Shown one piece after another: positions 46,187 to 51,850 of a stretch of DNA of 64,000 nucleotides; the first letter of the stretch is position 1; each line of letters opens with the position of its first letter. The translations under genes were made by a program, and so were the position numbers. The DNA lies in sequence record NC_031126.1, one strand, 5' to 3'. The notes beneath the pieces are model-generated. The model made no database searches and was not told the origin of the DNA. It was given only the letters and a program-made list of their open reading frames with translations.

Positions 46187-48697
46187 ATGTTCAAAGTAGA
46201 ACGGATTACATTAAAAGGCTTTACCGGGATGGGTCTGCACGAAATCGAAACATTTGATTTTAAAGTGGAATCAATGACGACCATCATTCTGGGCGGGAAT
46301 GGTTGCGGTAAGACCAGTTTACTGGCAGTGTATTTCCCGTTAGCACCAAGCAAAACCGAATTTGTCGATGGGGGTTCATACACCAACGTCGCTAAATGCG
46401 ATGACAAACGCTATAAGTTTTTTGTCAAAAAGAACGGCAGCAGCTTAGTCTGCTCAATTACTGATATGGATACCGGTGCGCTTATCGTCGATGGCGTCAA
46501 TCCCAAAGTTTACAATGCGCGCGTCGAAGATATCACCGGGCTGAATAAAGAAGTAAAAGAACTCGTTAACGGCGAATCTGTCCTGACGCGGGCGAATACT
46601 GAATTACGGCGTCGTTGGTTTACGCGGCTGTCTACCTCAGATTTGAGCTTTGCGTTAGACTTCTACAAGAAGCTGCGGAAGAACCTGAGTTTGACCAACG
46701 GGGCTATCGATCACACGGCGAAGAAAGTCGCCGACATGAAAATGCGGGTGATTGAAGACGAAGGAGAGCGTGAGCGTCTGTCTCAACGTTTAACGGAGTT
46801 GGAGCAAGAGCTAGGCGAGCTGAACAAACTCATCAACTGCCTACCTGGCATCAGCATTGGTGTGTCTGCATCGACGATTCGTTCTAAGCTGAATGGGTTA
46901 GGTCCAGATGTTGAGGAGATACTGGCTGCTAAGACGCTACCGACACCGGTCACCATCGAAGCTGCATTGCATAGCCTGAATACGTGGCGTGAGTTGTCTT
47001 CGGCCGCAGAGGCCAGCGTTAACACGTACAATAAAGAATTGTCGTTGCTGCTAGACGAGGTGAACCGTCAGGAATATCTGATGCGTAACCACGCGGGATT
47101 AAAGGATACACTGGAGCGTTTGAGTTTGGACCTTACTAACCATTGCGTTGAGCATTGGATGTGGGGTGATTTGGCGATGAGCGATACCATCTCCATTCAA
47201 ATGCTGCGTAAAGCGCAATCAGATGCTCGTCAGTGGTCGCGTGAGCTGTCAGGGGCAGTGGACTATGTCCACACCAACGACAAGCTGAGAAAGGCGGAGG
47301 AAGACCTCCTGAACCACGACGCCACATCGGTTGCTTATAAAGAGAAACGCCAGCGAGCGGTGAATATCCTTGAACGCCTACAACACGACCGTACTCACTT
47401 CCTCGATACTCAGGAAGTGGACTGTCCGAAATGTAATTATCGTTTCCGTCCGGGCGTCAATGATAGTCTTGAAAACATCGATGCCAGCATTGCAAAACAG
47501 AATGGGTGGATTCGTGAGCTGGATGTCGCGCTTGAAACGCACATGCAAACACGTTCGGTATTAGAAGAAGATGTGAACGCTAAGCGGAAAATCCGTGATG
47601 TTATCATGACTTATTCTCGCGACCCAATTGTGGCACTGTTTTTCAAGACAGTTCAAGCGGAAGATGCGTTTGTTCCTAACCGTCACAAGTTATCCAGTCT
47701 GGTGAATCACTTCCTAACCGAGCTGGAAGAAGCCATCAGTTACCGGACAACATACGACCAACTCAAGAAAGCGGAGCGGGAATGGGATGAAGCGGTACGT
47801 GCAGTAGGCAATGTGGATGTGGCGCTTGAAAAGAAAGTGCAGCGTTTGCGGGGTCTACTGGATGAAGAATCCGTTAAACTTACTACTGCCCGTGCTGGAT
47901 TGAAAGACGCGCAAGATGAGCACGACCGACAACAATCGCTCTATGCGCGCGCTGACGTGGTTCTGCGGGCTTGGGAAGGGATAGAGCAGGATATCGAGAC
48001 TTCGACTAACAACGAGGCTGTGAGATACCTTATACAGCAGCGTGAGAACAAACTCGATGCCTACGCTACGGCGCGTGACCGTTTCCGTGGGATGGAATCA
48101 GAAATGATTACGTTGGCTGGGCTGGAAGCGGAATTGACCGACCTGAAAGTAAGGCAGTTTAATAACCGTCAGATGATTACTGCATTCTCACCTGAAAAAG
48201 GTGTGCTTAGTCGTTACATCTACAACTCGGTAGTCCGCATCACGGAACTGATGAATAAATACATTGGGGCCGTGTGGAACTATCCGATGCAGGTCCTGCC
48301 GTGTGACGTCAGTGAAGGTGATATGGATTACACCTTCCCTTATCTGCTGAACAATCAACCGACGCCGGTTCCGGACGTCTGTAAAGGTTCTAAAGCACAA
48401 CAGAACATCTTTAACTTAGCGTATCGCCTGACAGGGTACAAAGCCATGAATTTACATGGCTATCCATTGTTATTGGATGAACCCTCTGAAGGCATGGATG
48501 AAGAGCACCGGCATGCGTTAGTGGGTTTTATCAAAATGCTGATTAATTCTGGTGAGTTCTCGCAGGTTATTGTGGTTTCACACGATGCTGATGTGCACTC
48601 GAAACTTAATGAAGCATCCTATTGTGTTATCGATCCAACGGGCGTTACATTGCCCCCGGTGTACAATACGGGTGTGAAGATTGTTTACGCGGACTGA
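46187..48697 (+). CDS. sbcC: SbcC/Rad50-like SMC ATPase (recombination/repair exonuclease subunit)
   Basis: Walker A GGNGCGKTS, long coiled coils with a CPKC zinc hook, signature-like SKAQQ, Walker B LLLDEP, terminal VSH. Confidence 0.92.
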   Translation: MFKVERITLKGFTGMGLHEIETFDFKVESMTTIILGGNGCGKTSLLAVYFPLAPSKTEFVDGGSYTNVAKCDDKRYKFFVKKNGSSLVCSITDMDTGALIVDGVNPKVYNARVEDITGLNKEVKELVNGESVLTRANTELRRRWFTRLSTSDLSFALDFYKKLRKNLSLTNGAIDHTAKKVADMKMRVIEDEGERERLSQRLTELEQELGELNKLINCLPGISIGVSASTIRSKLNGLGPDVEEILAAKTLPTPVTIEAALHSLNTWRELSSAAEASVNTYNKELSLLLDEVNRQEYLMRNHAGLKDTLERLSLDLTNHCVEHWMWGDLAMSDTISIQMLRKAQSDARQWSRELSGAVDYVHTNDKLRKAEEDLLNHDATSVAYKEKRQRAVNILERLQHDRTHFLDTQEVDCPKCNYRFRPGVNDSLENIDASIAKQNGWIRELDVALETHMQTRSVLEEDVNAKRKIRDVIMTYSRDPIVALFFKTVQAEDAFVPNRHKLSSLVNHFLTELEEAISYRTTYDQLKKAEREWDEAVRAVGNVDVALEKKVQRLRGLLDEESVKLTTARAGLKDAQDEHDRQQSLYARADVVLRAWEGIEQDIETSTNNEAVRYLIQQRENKLDAYATARDRFRGMESEMITLAGLEAELTDLKVRQFNNRQMITAFSPEKGVLSRYIYNSVVRITELMNKYIGAVWNYPMQVLPCDVSEGDMDYTFPYLLNNQPTPVPDVCKGSKAQQNIFNLAYRLTGYKAMNLHGYPLLLDEPSEGMDEEHRHALVGFIKMLINSGEFSQVIVVSHDADVHSKLNEASYCVIDPTGVTLPPVYNTGVKIVYAD

Positions 48698-48700
48698 TAA

Positions 48701-48850
48701 ATGTTTAATGCGTTAGTGACTGTTATTGCTTGGACGTGTGGGGCCGCTTATGTGGCTGGCCTCTTCACTGCTGTACTTATTGCACAACTTTGGCCAATGC
48801 CGGGTCGTGTTCTGGATTCCTGCTGGAAAAAATATAAGGAGTCGAAATGA
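48701..48850 (+). CDS. Small membrane protein, 49 aa (not in ORF track)
   Basis: MFNALVTVIAWTCGAAYVAGLFTAVLIAQLWPMPGRVLDSCWKKYKESK*; its stop overlaps the next ATG (ATGA). Confidence 0.55.
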   Translation: MFNALVTVIAWTCGAAYVAGLFTAVLIAQLWPMPGRVLDSCWKKYKESK

Positions 48851-48987
48851 CTGCTGAGTCGTTCGATGCGATTGTTACATCAGTGGCGTTTACGGGCCTC
48901 TGTTTGTGGATTGTGGGTAAAGCCCTCGGTTGGGTTTTGAAGCATGCAGAAAAGAAAGGAGCCTTAGATGGCCAAACAAACTGGTAA
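48847..48987 (+). CDS. Small membrane protein, 46 aa (not in ORF track)
   Basis: MTAESFDAIVTSVAFTGLCLWIVGKALGWVLKHAEKKGALDGQTNW*; AAGGAG RBS. Confidence 0.6.
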   Translation: MTAESFDAIVTSVAFTGLCLWIVGKALGWVLKHAEKKGALDGQTNW

Positions 48988-49183
48988 GTGGTCTAAGACC
49001 AGCTTTTGGTTAGAGCTGGCGTTTGTTGTTATCCTGAGTGCGATGGCGATGTGGAAGGGACCTGACCGCTTTGACTTTATCATTGCGTTGCTGGTAGGCT
49101 TTGTGTGGGGTGCCCGCTACGTCAAAGAACCTTGTATTTTCAAACGGATGATTCTGCGTAAGAAATGCGACTGTTGCAAATAA
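48968..49183 (+). CDS. Small two-TM membrane protein
   Basis: 71 aa, two hydrophobic segments, basic Cys-ending tail; AAGGAG RBS. Confidence 0.7.
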   Translation: MAKQTGKWSKTSFWLELAFVVILSAMAMWKGPDRFDFIIALLVGFVWGARYVKEPCIFKRMILRKKCDCCK

Positions 49184-49281
49184 TCTTTGGGCTCCTACTC
49201 AGTGGCGGTGTAGGAGCTGTATGTTTTACGCTGGGTGCAGTATTGTGTCTCACTCAAGGCTGGTTCTAAGGGGTATCAGCA

Positions 49282-49626: not shown

Positions 49627-50106
49627 ATGACCGAGATTGTTATCCTTGATAACGCTTCGCAGTTGACATCAGAGCAGCAGAAGCAGGTTCTTAAACTACA
49701 TTACTCTTTTTTGAATTATCAGCGGTCCGCACTTGAAGCCGACCACCCCATCCCAGAATTACGTGTTGAGCAACTGTTTGCGGGCAACCGCATCGGCCTT
49801 GCAATGCATAACGGGCAACCGGTGGCTTACTGCGTTTACCGTATTATCGGCGGTGTCTTAAAGATACGCTCCATCTTCGTTATGGAATCGTTCCGTCGTA
49901 ATGGCCTTATGACTGATTTACTCAACAACATCCGCCAGCACTCAACGTTCTGGCAGGCGTGTCTGACCGTCCACAAAAATTGTAAAGCCGCCGTTTCGTT
50001 CTTCAAAGGGCGGGGTTACAAAGCCACCGATGATGGCGACTGGGCACAGATGGCCTACTTTGTGACTGAAAGTAGCTCAGAAACACCCTTAGCAGCAACA
50101 GCATAA
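49627..50106 (+). CDS. GNAT family acetyltransferase
   Basis: IRSIFV.ESFRRNGL.T.LL (motif A) and N..A..FF..RGY (motif B). Confidence 0.85.
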   Translation: MTEIVILDNASQLTSEQQKQVLKLHYSFLNYQRSALEADHPIPELRVEQLFAGNRIGLAMHNGQPVAYCVYRIIGGVLKIRSIFVMESFRRNGLMTDLLNNIRQHSTFWQACLTVHKNCKAAVSFFKGRGYKATDDGDWAQMAYFVTESSSETPLAATA

Positions 50107-50174
50107 ACGACAAGCTCTCCTACGTATACTTTTTCACTATGAGTGAAACTGTGTTTACGTAAGGAGAGCTATTT

Positions 50175-50504
50175 ATGTTTAACCCGCAACTTTCTGCATT
50201 CCCTGTTGAAATCTGTTGGCAGGAATATTCCCGCGTTATCCCTTTCTTGAAGGATACTTTGATGGAAAACCCGAAGCACGTTAACGTTGGTACCATTGGT
50301 CATGTTGACCATAGCCGTACCGCCGTTTCGGCTTGTGTATCTGGTGCGCTGGGCACGCTACCGAAACAAGGTTACGATTGGACACCGCTGACCAAACATC
50401 AGCAACCGTTAAATGCGATGAACGCCACCATGTTGGATGTTCTCGAAGATGCCTTACTCAACGGTAAAAATGTCCACTTAGCGCGTATCCATCCGGTGGA
50501 ATAG
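50175..50504 (+). CDS. Small protein carrying the EF-Tu N-terminal motif [12 protein letters not shown]
   Basis: Exact 12-residue match to the EF-Tu N-terminus at 50277-50312; an internal AAGGA RBS with ATG 50262 would give an 80-aa product starting [20 protein letters not shown]. Confidence 0.7.
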   Translation: [109 protein letters not shown]

Positions 50505-50515
50505 TTTTTTACGTC

Positions 50516-51082
50516 ATGAACCTTTGTTGTGTTGAATCCCAGGAGCTTATCATGAACTACGAAGATATCGTCAGTGCTATCGGTGAAGAATGGAGTGCCC
50601 GACACGACCAAGGCGAAGCTGGTACTTTTGCGGTAAAGGCAATGGGTAAGATTGTTACTCCCTGGGCGCGCGAGTACATCGCCCAAGGGTACGAGCCACT
50701 GATAGCCGAATATGAGAAATCGTTAGTGGCATCAAAGTCAGGTTATGGCCGGGTCTTTTACATTTATGGTGACCGGTCGGAAATGGTTTTACACATCGAA
50801 GTTCCTAGTGCGGATTTGAAAGCACTCTGGCCGATACCTTTACCACAGCAAGCGGTCATCGCTTTGACTGAGTTAACGGGTCGTGTTGATCCGCCCATTG
50901 AAATTATCAATGAAGAAAATCGACTTTACGCTAACTCGGGCTTGGCTATTGCTTTGACGTATTACGAACAATACATTCATCCAGTACGTGACGGTTACAA
51001 ACGGGTGTTCTATTACACCCGCAAATTAGCCTTCCCGCATCCGTATGTCTTTACTCACATTGACACGGAGTTAGCATCATGA
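50516..51082 (+). CDS. Hypothetical protein
   Basis: ~180 aa; AGGAG RBS before ATG ~50550; stop overlaps the next start. Confidence 0.7.
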   Translation: MNLCCVESQELIMNYEDIVSAIGEEWSARHDQGEAGTFAVKAMGKIVTPWAREYIAQGYEPLIAEYEKSLVASKSGYGRVFYIYGDRSEMVLHIEVPSADLKALWPIPLPQQAVIALTELTGRVDPPIEIINEENRLYANSGLAIALTYYEQYIHPVRDGYKRVFYYTRKLAFPHPYVFTHIDTELAS

Positions 51083-51384
51083 GGGATGGTTGGGTAAAAG
51101 TAATGTGGGTACGTCCCGAGCTTGACTTAACGAGGTTTCCGCCAGTGTCCAGTATTCGAAATACAAAAAAAGCAATAGCCTGCTCCATAGACCGGGCTTT
51201 GGGTTTCCCATCGGCAAACGAAAAGACCATCTTTGTTACGGCATTAAAACCGGGGCAGGAAGAGTCTGCTTTAAAAGAAGCAGTGACAAAACGGATCTGC
51301 GGGCACATCGAGAAGATTTGCCAGTCCGAGTGGAACCGTTTGGCTAACGTGGGGTCGAGAACAATTGCTAATCTTCCGCGATGA
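51079..51384 (+). CDS. Hypothetical protein
   Basis: 101 aa, ATGA overlap with the upstream gene. Confidence 0.55.
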   Translation: MRDGWVKVMWVRPELDLTRFPPVSSIRNTKKAIACSIDRALGFPSANEKTIFVTALKPGQEESALKEAVTKRICGHIEKICQSEWNRLANVGSRTIANLPR

Positions 51385-51850
51385 AGCCCATATCGACGGA
51401 GACCTCTTTAACGCGAAAGAACCCTACAAAGTGGTGACGATTAACTGCGTAGGGGCGATGGGCAAAGGAATTGCCCTCGCTTGTAAAGAGCGTTTTCCTA
51501 GAATCTATGAGGACTACCGCTTGCGTTGCAAGCAAAATGAGATTCTAATCGGTAACGTCTATCTCTACGAGGAAGAGAAAATTATCTTGTTACCGACTAA
51601 AACTCATTTTAAGTACCGTTCAGAAATCGCATACGTGACCACTGGCATCGATGCCCTGGCCCGTCTTGGAAACGACCTGAGCGAAGACATCGCTATCCCG
51701 CCTTTAGGCATGGCGAATGGTTGGCTGCGCGAGTATGAACGCGCCATCATTTATCGTCATCTGTACGACGCACTGAATTCCGGAGAACGTAACTATCGCA
51801 TCTACTTACCCAAAGCGTTAATGATAGAGGCTAAGAAAACTCTACTGTAA
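51365..51850 (+). CDS. Macrodomain (DarG/TARG1-like ADP-ribosyl glycohydrolase)
   Basis: GDLF, TINCVGAMGKGIAL..K..FP, I.LLPTK.H, IAIP.LG..NG.L motifs. Confidence 0.88.
   Translation: MLIFRDEAHIDGDLFNAKEPYKVVTINCVGAMGKGIALACKERFPRIYEDYRLRCKQNEILIGNVYLYEEEKIILLPTKTHFKYRSEIAYVTTGIDALARLGNDLSEDIAIPPLGMANGWLREYERAIIYRHLYDALNSGERNYRIYLPKALMIEAKKTLL

Follow-up and report, generated by a model that had tools for sequence, protein, structure and literature searches.

The 64,000-nucleotide stretch of NC_031126.1 analyzed here (the window) belongs to Erwinia phage vB_EamM_ChrisDB (KX397366), a jumbo phage of the genus Machinavirus with a genome of 244.8 kb and Erwinia amylovora as its host. Identity to this phage was 100% over the 1.5 kb tested, and window coordinates equal record coordinates minus 124000. 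One of its genes, gp215, encodes a protein of 109 residues that carries a piece of the N-terminus of elongation factor Tu (EF-Tu) and bears the GenBank product name "putative elongation factor Tu". An N-terminal module is followed in this protein by a segment derived from β1, the P-loop, and helix A of the EF-Tu GTPase (G) domain and then by a C-terminal part of about 45 residues. The gene and the features inside its EF-Tu-like part are these:

50175-50504, plus strand: gp215 coding sequence, ATG start, 109 residues (open reading frame [ORF] and GenBank annotation)
50250-50357, plus strand: EF-Tu-homologous segment, gp215 residues 26-61 corresponding to EF-Tu residues ~3-38 (BLASTP, hhalign, and PDB profile)
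50277-50312, plus strand: identical motif of 12 residues, gp215 H35-H46 equal to E. coli EF-Tu H11-H22
50313-50321, plus strand: S47-R48-T49 in place of the Walker A G-K-T (sequence and family alignment)

Gp215 matches phrog_12626, the long form of the family, over residues 1-109 (E 1.6e-61) and phrog_28329, the Seoulvirus short form, over residues 3-64 (E 4.5e-17), and by full-length profile match it is a member of PHROG 12626 and 28329.

Similarity to EF-Tu and loss of the GTPase motifs

In a pairwise BLASTP comparison, residues 26-60 of gp215 align with residues 3-37 of E. coli EF-Tu at 16/35 identities (E 2e-9), and hhalign places residues 29-59 on EF-Tu 6-36 with a probability of 95.8% (E 8e-9). 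The EF-Tu models of NCBIfam match residues 26-61 with E values of 6e-7 to 2e-6, while the NCBIfam models of eIF2-gamma are approximately a thousand-fold weaker. A profile of the gp215 family compared with the PDB found EF-Tu chains at E 6e-7 to 1e-5 over residues 29-61, the top chains being the short N-terminal tryptic fragments of EF-Tu in 5I4R and 2HCJ. By these comparisons the similarity is far above chance, is specific to EF-Tu, and is limited to β1, the P-loop, and helix A. Gp215 and the N-terminus of the EF-Tu G domain have the same spacing from a Lys/Glu-rich stretch to HVNVG, and in helix A the residues that face the core are similar in kind, but gp215 has an extra N-terminal module of 23 residues and an unrelated C-terminus. 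The tryptic fragment, a separate chain in 2HCJ/2HDN and 5I4R (profile E 6e-7 and 1.7e-6), is the same EF-Tu piece as that in gp215 and stays attached to the remainder of the G domain, so the piece can exist as a separate docked polypeptide. It is a product of proteolysis with an intact GKT, whereas gp215 is a gene product with additional modules and a dead P-loop.

Both Pfam PF00009 (GTP_EFTU; 15.2 bits, cut-off 26.5 bits) and TIGR00485 (27.6 bits, cut-off 522 bits) fall under their cut-offs on gp215. The G1 region reads G42-H-V-D-H-S-R-T49, and with Arg48 replacing the Walker Lys it does not conform to GxxxxGK[ST]. In orthologs this position is taken by R, M, D, or G, and Lys is found there only at loci L022 and L023 and in protein P0021, where the next residue is Pro. 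No aligned segment was found past residue ~61 of gp215 for G2 (the switch I Thr), G3 (DxxG), G4 (NKxD), or G5 (SAx), and the β-barrel domains II and III are missing from this protein of 109 residues. Residues 62-109 gave no significant hhalign match to the EF-Tu G domain (E 0.31, probability 0.2%). Because the Walker Lys, G2-G5, and domains II and III are all missing, gp215, judged by its sequence, is without GTPase capability. The database labels "elongation factor Tu", "GTPase", and "translation elongation factor" for this family are wrong, since gp215-type proteins cannot be GTPases.

The original prediction, made from the letters of the window, had described at 50175-50504 a captured tuf fragment with 12 residues identical to EF-Tu, a GKT changed to SRT, a remainder unrelated to EF-Tu, and no possibility of GTPase activity. 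The 12 identities and the S47-R48-T49 replacement are present in the ORF, and capture of a tuf fragment is borne out by the BLASTP, NCBIfam, PDB-profile, and hhalign matches. The missing GTPase parts and the lack of demonstrable similarity between the C-terminal part and EF-Tu agree with the other two points.

Orthologs and selection on the EF-Tu-identical motif

Orthologs of gp215 lie at the same genomic place in Machinavirus (Caitlin, Machina, Huxley, Parshik, and the pEa_SNUABM phages) and in Erskinevirus (Asesino, phiEaH2, and Stratton). Those of Seoulvirus include gp192 of SPN3US and proteins of SEGD1, the SPFM and SPLA phages, and phages of E. coli and Proteus, and further orthologs are found on uncultivated jumbo-phage contigs. 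The ORF is unbroken in more than 20 genomes of 4 genera. A hidden Markov model (HMM) search of 1.84 billion representatives returned only 8 clusters of the family type; the remaining ~57 matches were truncated, frameshifted, or chimeric EF-Tu fragments, which are artefacts.

The gp215 gene is under strong purifying selection, with pairwise ratios of nonsynonymous to synonymous substitution (dN/dS) of 0.05-0.26. Among Machinavirus and Erskinevirus genomes bearing the identical motif, its 12 codons have 0 nonsynonymous changes, and the sole substitution of the motif in these 2 genera is H43Q, in Caitlin and SNUABM_8. Synonymous changes in the motif occupy up to 8 of 8.3 possible sites, as between ChrisDB and Machina, and are thus saturated. 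Synonymous saturation alongside almost unchanged residues indicates that the constraint acts on the protein and not on the DNA. The fragment had been predicted to be retained, on the understanding that decay of the motif in orthologs would speak against this, and no such decay is seen in the gp215 family.

Outside the motif, gp215 orthologs are 40-55% identical, and the EF-Tu-identical segment is the part most conserved among them. NVGTIG is invariant across Machinavirus, Erskinevirus, Seoulvirus, and Wellingtonvirus and nearly so in metagenomic relatives; the conserved core of the family comprises NVGTIG together with C14, E17-Y18, R20, F24-L25, and C54..GALGTLP. In the P-loop, G42 is invariant, Arg48 and S/T49 are nearly invariant among the long forms, and H-x-D-H remains identical to EF-Tu in 3 genera. 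The P-loop varies by lineage, as HVDHSRT in ChrisDB, HVDWGMS..LTAA in Wellingtonvirus, KVCFGKP..LTAC in L022, and RVAFDDT in SPN3US, and every lineage retains its own subset of the original EF-Tu residues. This mosaic points to descent from EF-Tu rather than convergence. The Seoulvirus and L022 proteins have only 69-81 residues and lack the C-terminal ~40, and since these short forms end early, the common core is the N-terminal module plus β1, the loop, and helix A.

EF-Tu start pieces in other phages

Additional small proteins with the EF-Tu piece came from a scan of IMG/VR. The loci concerned are as follows:

Locus L057, 2971-3255, and locus L058 (proteins P0102-P0137): marine family, JGI name "EF-Tu-like GTPase"
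Locus L060, 2902-3108 (Serratia phage PS2 gp024), and locus L059, 2686-3111 (Muldoon): Muldoonvirus ORFs
Locus L061, 1507-1785: gp88 of Pseudomonas phage Dolphis, EF-Tu piece at the protein start

The marine family consists of proteins of 58-102 residues in 36 clusters, partly from Tara and other marine samples. These proteins start like EF-Tu, with the same 11-residue spacing ahead of HVNVG, and have an invariant HxNVGTIGHxDxG, with I, F, or L at the Walker Lys position in most members and an intact GK[ST] in 2 of them. After the P-loop region they continue with an invariant GDYIDPTPWTPEDHERF. Aligned with hhalign, the marine family matches gp215 residues 31-72 with a probability of 97.8% (E 7e-13), and this alignment goes past the EF-Tu part, through Y-D-W-T-P. 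On profile similarity the marine family is probably a sister of the gp215 family, from which it differs in having the motif at the very N-terminus, no N-terminal module, and another C-terminus. A sister family with an N-terminal motif suggests that the 5' end of tuf was captured including its start codon and that gp215 gained its N-terminal extension later. On the one contig examined, L057, which is from a phage that is not a jumbo phage, the marine-family gene lies beside a DUF1376 gene.

Short ORFs in 2 further phage groups are like gp215 in carrying the β1, P-loop, and helix A piece and ending soon after it, but they have no detectable similarity to gp215 outside this piece, and Muldoon and Dolphis retain GK[ST]. 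The first group, in Muldoonvirus, comprises gp024 of Serratia phage PS2 (68 residues) and ORFs of Muldoon (141 residues), Cronobacter phage VP8, and Serratia phage SP1. Here the EF-Tu motif is C-terminal, followed by ..K[ST]...GP.Y, and the ORF is under purifying selection (dN/dS 0.26 between PS2 and Muldoon). It lies just downstream of the dCTPase gene, within a series of small ORFs extending as far as srd, among neighbors of the T4 type (gp61 primase, gp56 dCTPase, and Srd). The second group is a Dolphis-like family from Pseudomonas phages such as Dolphis and Jeremy, with 24 clusters and a conserved basic C-terminus. The motif is deleted or degenerate in 7/15 aligned members and, on this alignment, is dispensable in the Dolphis-like family.

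Full-length EF-Tu-like proteins, with ~390-580 residues between stop codons, are encoded at loci L024-L056 on IMG/VR contigs of 35-530 kb, and many of them have a divergent switch I (…AKGGTVRD…). Like gp215, these genes of huge phages are phage-borne, derived from tuf, and carry the same N-terminal motif. Unlike gp215, their products retain GKT and the G-domain sequence that follows it, and they are presumably real GTPases.

Start codon, internal methionine, and the apparent split gene of Wellingtonvirus

Translation of gp215 involves 2 candidate initiation sites, and in Wellingtonvirus the gene appears to be divided between them:

50161-50177, plus strand: Shine-Dalgarno (SD) sequence AAGGAG (50161-50166), spacer of 8 nt, and gp215 ATG, in the conserved block AGGAGAGCTATTTATGTT
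50250-50264, plus strand: SD-like AAGGA (50250-50254), spacer of 7 nt, and in-frame ATG at 50262-50264 (Met30), a possible secondary start
Locus L014, 3066-3471 (Erwinia phage Wellington), and locus L015, 3059-3494 (pEa_SNUABM_11): apparent split gene

The SD and ATG block is unchanged in 11 genomes of Machinavirus, Erskinevirus, and Seoulvirus and is slightly altered in Wellingtonvirus, L019, and L022. Residues 1-29, the N-terminal module, are conserved as protein. Since the SD, the ATG, and these residues are all conserved, comparison of the genomes indicates that 50175 is the main start of gp215. An internal start at ATG 50262 had been proposed, which would place the motif at the N-terminus as in EF-Tu. 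As a replacement for 50175 it does not hold, but part of the idea stands, since AGGA/GAGG-N7-ATG(Met30) is retained in 3 genera (Machinavirus, Erskinevirus, and Wellingtonvirus) and the equivalent codon begins the separate motif ORF in Wellingtonvirus. Met30 is missing in Seoulvirus.

In the 2 Wellingtonvirus genomes, Wellington and pEa_SNUABM_11, a shift of 1 nt (+1) puts the N-terminal module, as an ORF of 58-62 residues, and the motif ORF in different frames. The motif ORF begins exactly at the equivalent of Met30, preceded by AGGAG, and contains an insertion of ~45 residues ahead of NVGTIG; GenBank annotates this second ORF only. A programmed +1 frameshift is unlikely here, as CUC-A is a poor slip site and there is a good SD 7 nt before the ATG. 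From this arrangement it appears that the N-terminal module and the EF-Tu-like module can exist as separate polypeptides.

A hairpin that buries the Shine-Dalgarno sequence of gp215

Directly upstream of gp215 is gp214, and the short interval between the 2 genes contains a nested RNA hairpin:

49627-50106, plus strand: gp214, GNAT-fold acetyltransferase (Pfam Acetyltransf_1, E 4e-9; phrog_3810)
50113-50170, plus strand: nested RNA hairpin between the GNAT stop codon (50104-50106) and the gp215 start, burying the SD
50113-50121 with 50162-50170, extended by 50122-50126 with 50156-50160, plus strand: outer stem, 9+5 bp
50132-50148, plus strand: inner hairpin

The hairpin has a minimum free energy of -31.9 kcal/mol (z -6.7). 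Over 15 genomes its outer helix is 92% paired, compared with 39-51% in slid controls, and 4 pairs of the outer stem show compensatory double changes, in SPN3US and Wellingtonvirus. A covariance model gave one match per strand in the window, the weaker match on the opposite strand being at the same place. The GNAT stop codon of ChrisDB is 6 nt 5' of the hairpin, and in all genomes the stem starts 5-13 nt past this codon. Rfam gave no match at 49900-50600, and a scan for sigma-70 promoters and terminators did no better than on shuffled sequence.

From its position we infer that the hairpin would fit a coupling of gp215 translation to that of the GNAT gene. The hairpin suggests that gp214 and gp215 would be made together in this way, and possibly they act together; it may mediate either such coupling or promoter-dependent translation. 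An SD-burying hairpin of this kind is a clean case for studying gene-specific translational control in a jumbo phage.

The GNAT gene and the surrounding region

A GNAT gene of the gp214 type lies directly upstream of the gp215 family in every family-bearing genome examined (53 phage records plus individually compared loci). The best PDB match of gp214 is 1Q2Y (E 1e-6), and its match to RimI is weak (0.014), so an assignment as RimI was rejected in favor of a generic GNAT match. The GNAT family has an unusual acetyl-CoA motif A (RRxGxM), which in Seoulvirus and Wellingtonvirus is without any glycine (RRRKTM and RRKYVM); to judge by this motif, the enzyme of these 2 genera may be atypical or inactive. 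A type II toxin-antitoxin pair with a GNAT toxin of the TacT/AtaT type does not fit, because the small gene is downstream of the GNAT gene and not upstream. No DNA-binding domain, such as the ribbon-helix-helix type of these antitoxins, was found in gp215 by Pfam, NCBIfam, or PADLOC, and PADLOC gave no match for gp214-217.

The gene order of the region is SMC-like protein, small ORFs, GNAT, gp215, variable genes, macro domain, and endolysin. The interval from the SMC-like gene (46187-48697) to the GNAT gene contains 4 tiny ORFs (48701-49269, plus strand) for hypothetical proteins of 34-71 residues, hydrophobic and membrane-like, whose number varies among relatives. The genes gp216-gp217 (50516-51384, plus strand) differ among close relatives and mark a hot spot of turnover between 2 conserved genes; gp216 of ChrisDB (188 residues, PHROG 17750) is swapped for other ORFs in pEa_SNUABM_9, Caitlin, and Machina. 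Downstream of these, gp218 (51365-51850, plus strand) encodes a macro-domain protein matching the DarG antitoxin, a DNA ADP-ribosyl glycohydrolase (NCBIfam E 1.8e-32; PADLOC E 1.7e-33), and is kept at the same position in all related genera. By homology its product is likely a counter-defense protein against DarT-type toxins. With this plausible anti-DarT protein in it, the stretch around gp215 looks like an accessory or counter-defense region. Capture of a tRNA gene together with tuf was considered and rejected, as neither the window nor 5 related loci contain a tRNA gene.

Predicted structure

AlphaFold2 models were of low confidence for both the ChrisDB target (16 sequences; predicted local distance difference test [pLDDT] score 55, predicted template modeling [pTM] score 0.24) and an Asesino-type target (21 sequences; pLDDT 58, pTM 0.22). 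Both models have helices at ~12-28, 51-60, and 86-95 and no sheet. These low scores are consistent with a protein that would fold on a partner or as an oligomer.

Possible function of gp215

The reading that we favor, with a probability of roughly 0.35, is that gp215 is a non-enzymatic binder or mimic with the role of a pseudo-EF-Tu. An ancestral phage would have captured the beginning of a bacterial tuf gene, coding for EF-Tu ~3-38 (β1, the P-loop, and helix A), and this piece would then have been exapted. Its present product would be a real, translated accessory protein with no enzymatic GTPase function, whose synthesis is gated by the mRNA hairpin that buries the SD behind gp214, and which acts by stoichiometric binding. 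Together, the β1 strand, identical to that of EF-Tu, and the P-loop without its lysine would form a pseudo-EF-Tu piece that serves as competitor or adaptor for a factor contacting this segment of EF-Tu. The β1 strand is buried in folded EF-Tu. For this reason the target would be limited to something that sees the segment exposed, in nascent, unfolded, or nucleotide-free EF-Tu and not on the folded surface; alternatively, the β-loop-α unit may dock onto a partner in the way it is docked within the G domain.

Three observations favor a pseudo-EF-Tu role. The residues kept are exactly those of EF-Tu, including the polar N and T and, in most lineages, the exposed H-x-D-H; the nucleotide-binding Lys has been lost in most members of 2 sister families, so that binding of nucleoside triphosphates cannot explain why the motif was retained in the gp215 and marine families; and phages have kept or acquired the EF-Tu piece several times.

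Other observations weigh against it. The burial of β1 makes mimicry of the folded EF-Tu surface unlikely, and the exposed face of helix A in gp215 is not EF-Tu-like, while the family has invariants of its own in C54 and GALGTLP. In Seoulvirus and L022, H-x-D-H is gone, as are the C-terminal 40 residues, and the loss of the motif in about half of the aligned Dolphis-like proteins counts in the same direction. The low AlphaFold2 confidence may reflect only the shallow alignments of 16-21 sequences. Finally, adjacency to the GNAT gene is by itself weak functional evidence and may reflect general collinearity, since gene order is shared among these genomes across the whole region and no GNAT gene neighbors the motif in the other families that bear it; the hairpin is a stronger hint of a link between gp214 and gp215.

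The main rival is pure structural exaptation, in which the β-loop-α unit serves only to nucleate folding and the protein has a role unconnected with EF-Tu or its partners, for example as a subunit or regulator of the GNAT enzyme or in host takeover. We regard this as possible, if somewhat unlikely. The residues shared with EF-Tu are mostly core-facing (V, V, I, and 2 Gly, and L/V, A/C, I/V, and L in helix A), the exposed positions of helix A have diverged, the decay of the P-loop differs by lineage, and the Dolphis-like family can do without the motif. Yet the invariant polar N37 and T40 and an H-x-D-H identical to EF-Tu in several lineages and in the marine family exceed what generic β-α packing needs, and an unrelated function does not account well for the recurrence of the EF-Tu piece in several phage groups.

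An improbable alternative is that gp215 is a minimal P-loop protein binding anions or phosphate, probably as an oligomer, in which backbone amides and Arg48 hold a nucleotide, an alarmone, polyphosphate, or nucleic acid. Designed β-P-loop-α polypeptides do bind phosphate-bearing ligands, and this idea would suit the invariant G42 and the nearly invariant R48 and S/T49 of the long forms, as well as the intact GK[ST] of Dolphis gp88, Muldoon, and 2 marine members. It is at odds with what stands in place of the Walker Lys (hydrophobic residues in the marine family, Met in Wellingtonvirus, and Asp or Gly in Seoulvirus) and with the absence of base-specificity motifs.

It is also quite improbable that gp215 is an internally deleted mini G-domain, its C-terminal 45 residues being a remnant of β4, helix C, and β5 of EF-Tu that would complete a 3-stranded parallel β1-αA-β4-αC-β5 fold with no switch regions. 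The best local hhalign match of residues 62-109 does fall at EF-Tu 117-128, as this model predicts, and Erskinevirus has a β-like stretch, PLVLIHAS, at the position expected for β4. However, that match is the non-significant one given above, AlphaFold2 shows no sheet, and the C-terminal part is missing in Seoulvirus, L022, and the marine family.

A decoy for the Lit protease or the Doc kinase is unlikely, and we would give this idea, or that of a binder of EF-Ts or the ribosome, both put forward in the original prediction, a very low probability. The neighborhood with its DarG-like macro domain is of an accessory or counter-defense kind, and the Muldoonvirus phages that have a similar ORF share the T4 type of neighbors, T4 being the type of phage excluded by Lit. 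Lit cuts EF-Tu at G59-I60, Doc modifies T382, Gol binds domains II/III, and the main contacts of EF-Ts on EF-Tu are helix D, His84/His118, and domain 3; the fragment in gp215 contains none of these, and PADLOC found no match.

A neutral recombination scar, a decaying pseudogene, or an element acting at the level of DNA or RNA would be in keeping with the decay of the motif in the Dolphis-like family and with the tuf fragments at contig ends and frameshifted copies that are common database artefacts, but for the gp215 family a neutral scar is refuted by the dN/dS analysis, and the motif residues held at synonymous saturation, the conserved SD and ATG, and the ORF intact in more than 20 genomes likewise leave these ideas hardly any room.

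The original prediction had also mentioned plant immunity, through overlap of the motif with the elf18 epitope that is sensed by EFR: the host of ChrisDB is a plant pathogen, and HVNVGTIG is the last 8 residues of elf18. Elf18 is the N-acetylated first 18 residues of EF-Tu, and EFR is specific to Brassicaceae (PMC8408165), whereas the plants attacked by E. amylovora are apple and pear. There is next to no chance of a decoy or antagonist of this kind, as only these 8/18 residues are common to both, the acetylated N-terminal 10 residues of elf18 are replaced by different ones internal to gp215, gp215 is intracellular with no visible signal peptide, and the family is equally conserved in phages of Salmonella, E. 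coli, and Proteus, with a sister family that is marine.

Implications

We found no paper on the gp215 protein in the literature on EF-Tu mimics, SPN3US gp192, ChrisDB, and EF-Tu-sensing defenses. The similarity to EF-Tu is itself already visible in database annotations. What is new is that gp215 is a selected, non-GTPase tuf fragment with a sister family in which the motif is N-terminal, together with the finding that the Walker lysine has been lost repeatedly, the split in Wellingtonvirus, and the gene-specific hairpin. The analysis also corrects misleading GTPase and EF-Tu names in the databases. SPN3US has an amber-mutant genetic system (PMC5105663), which makes its short-form ortholog gp192 experimentally tractable.

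A selected fragment of EF-Tu in phages, with a sister family and similar ORFs in unrelated phage groups, points to an unrecognized feature that phages exploit, either a surface for interaction or a step of assembly, in EF-Tu or in a protein that watches it. No bacterial protein is more abundant than EF-Tu, on which phage exclusion, toxins, and plant sensing are known to converge. A wider and more doubtful proposal is that the gp215 and marine families together form a single superfamily of mini-proteins, widespread in phages, that arose from the tuf 5' end, kept the β1 strand and P-loop shape of EF-Tu, and selectively lost the Walker lysine. Its members would be mimics engaging a conserved bacterial factor or an immune sensor that sees the EF-Tu segment only when it is exposed. 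If this were true, these proteins would be a new class of host-takeover or anti-defense proteins aimed at the most abundant protein of the cell.

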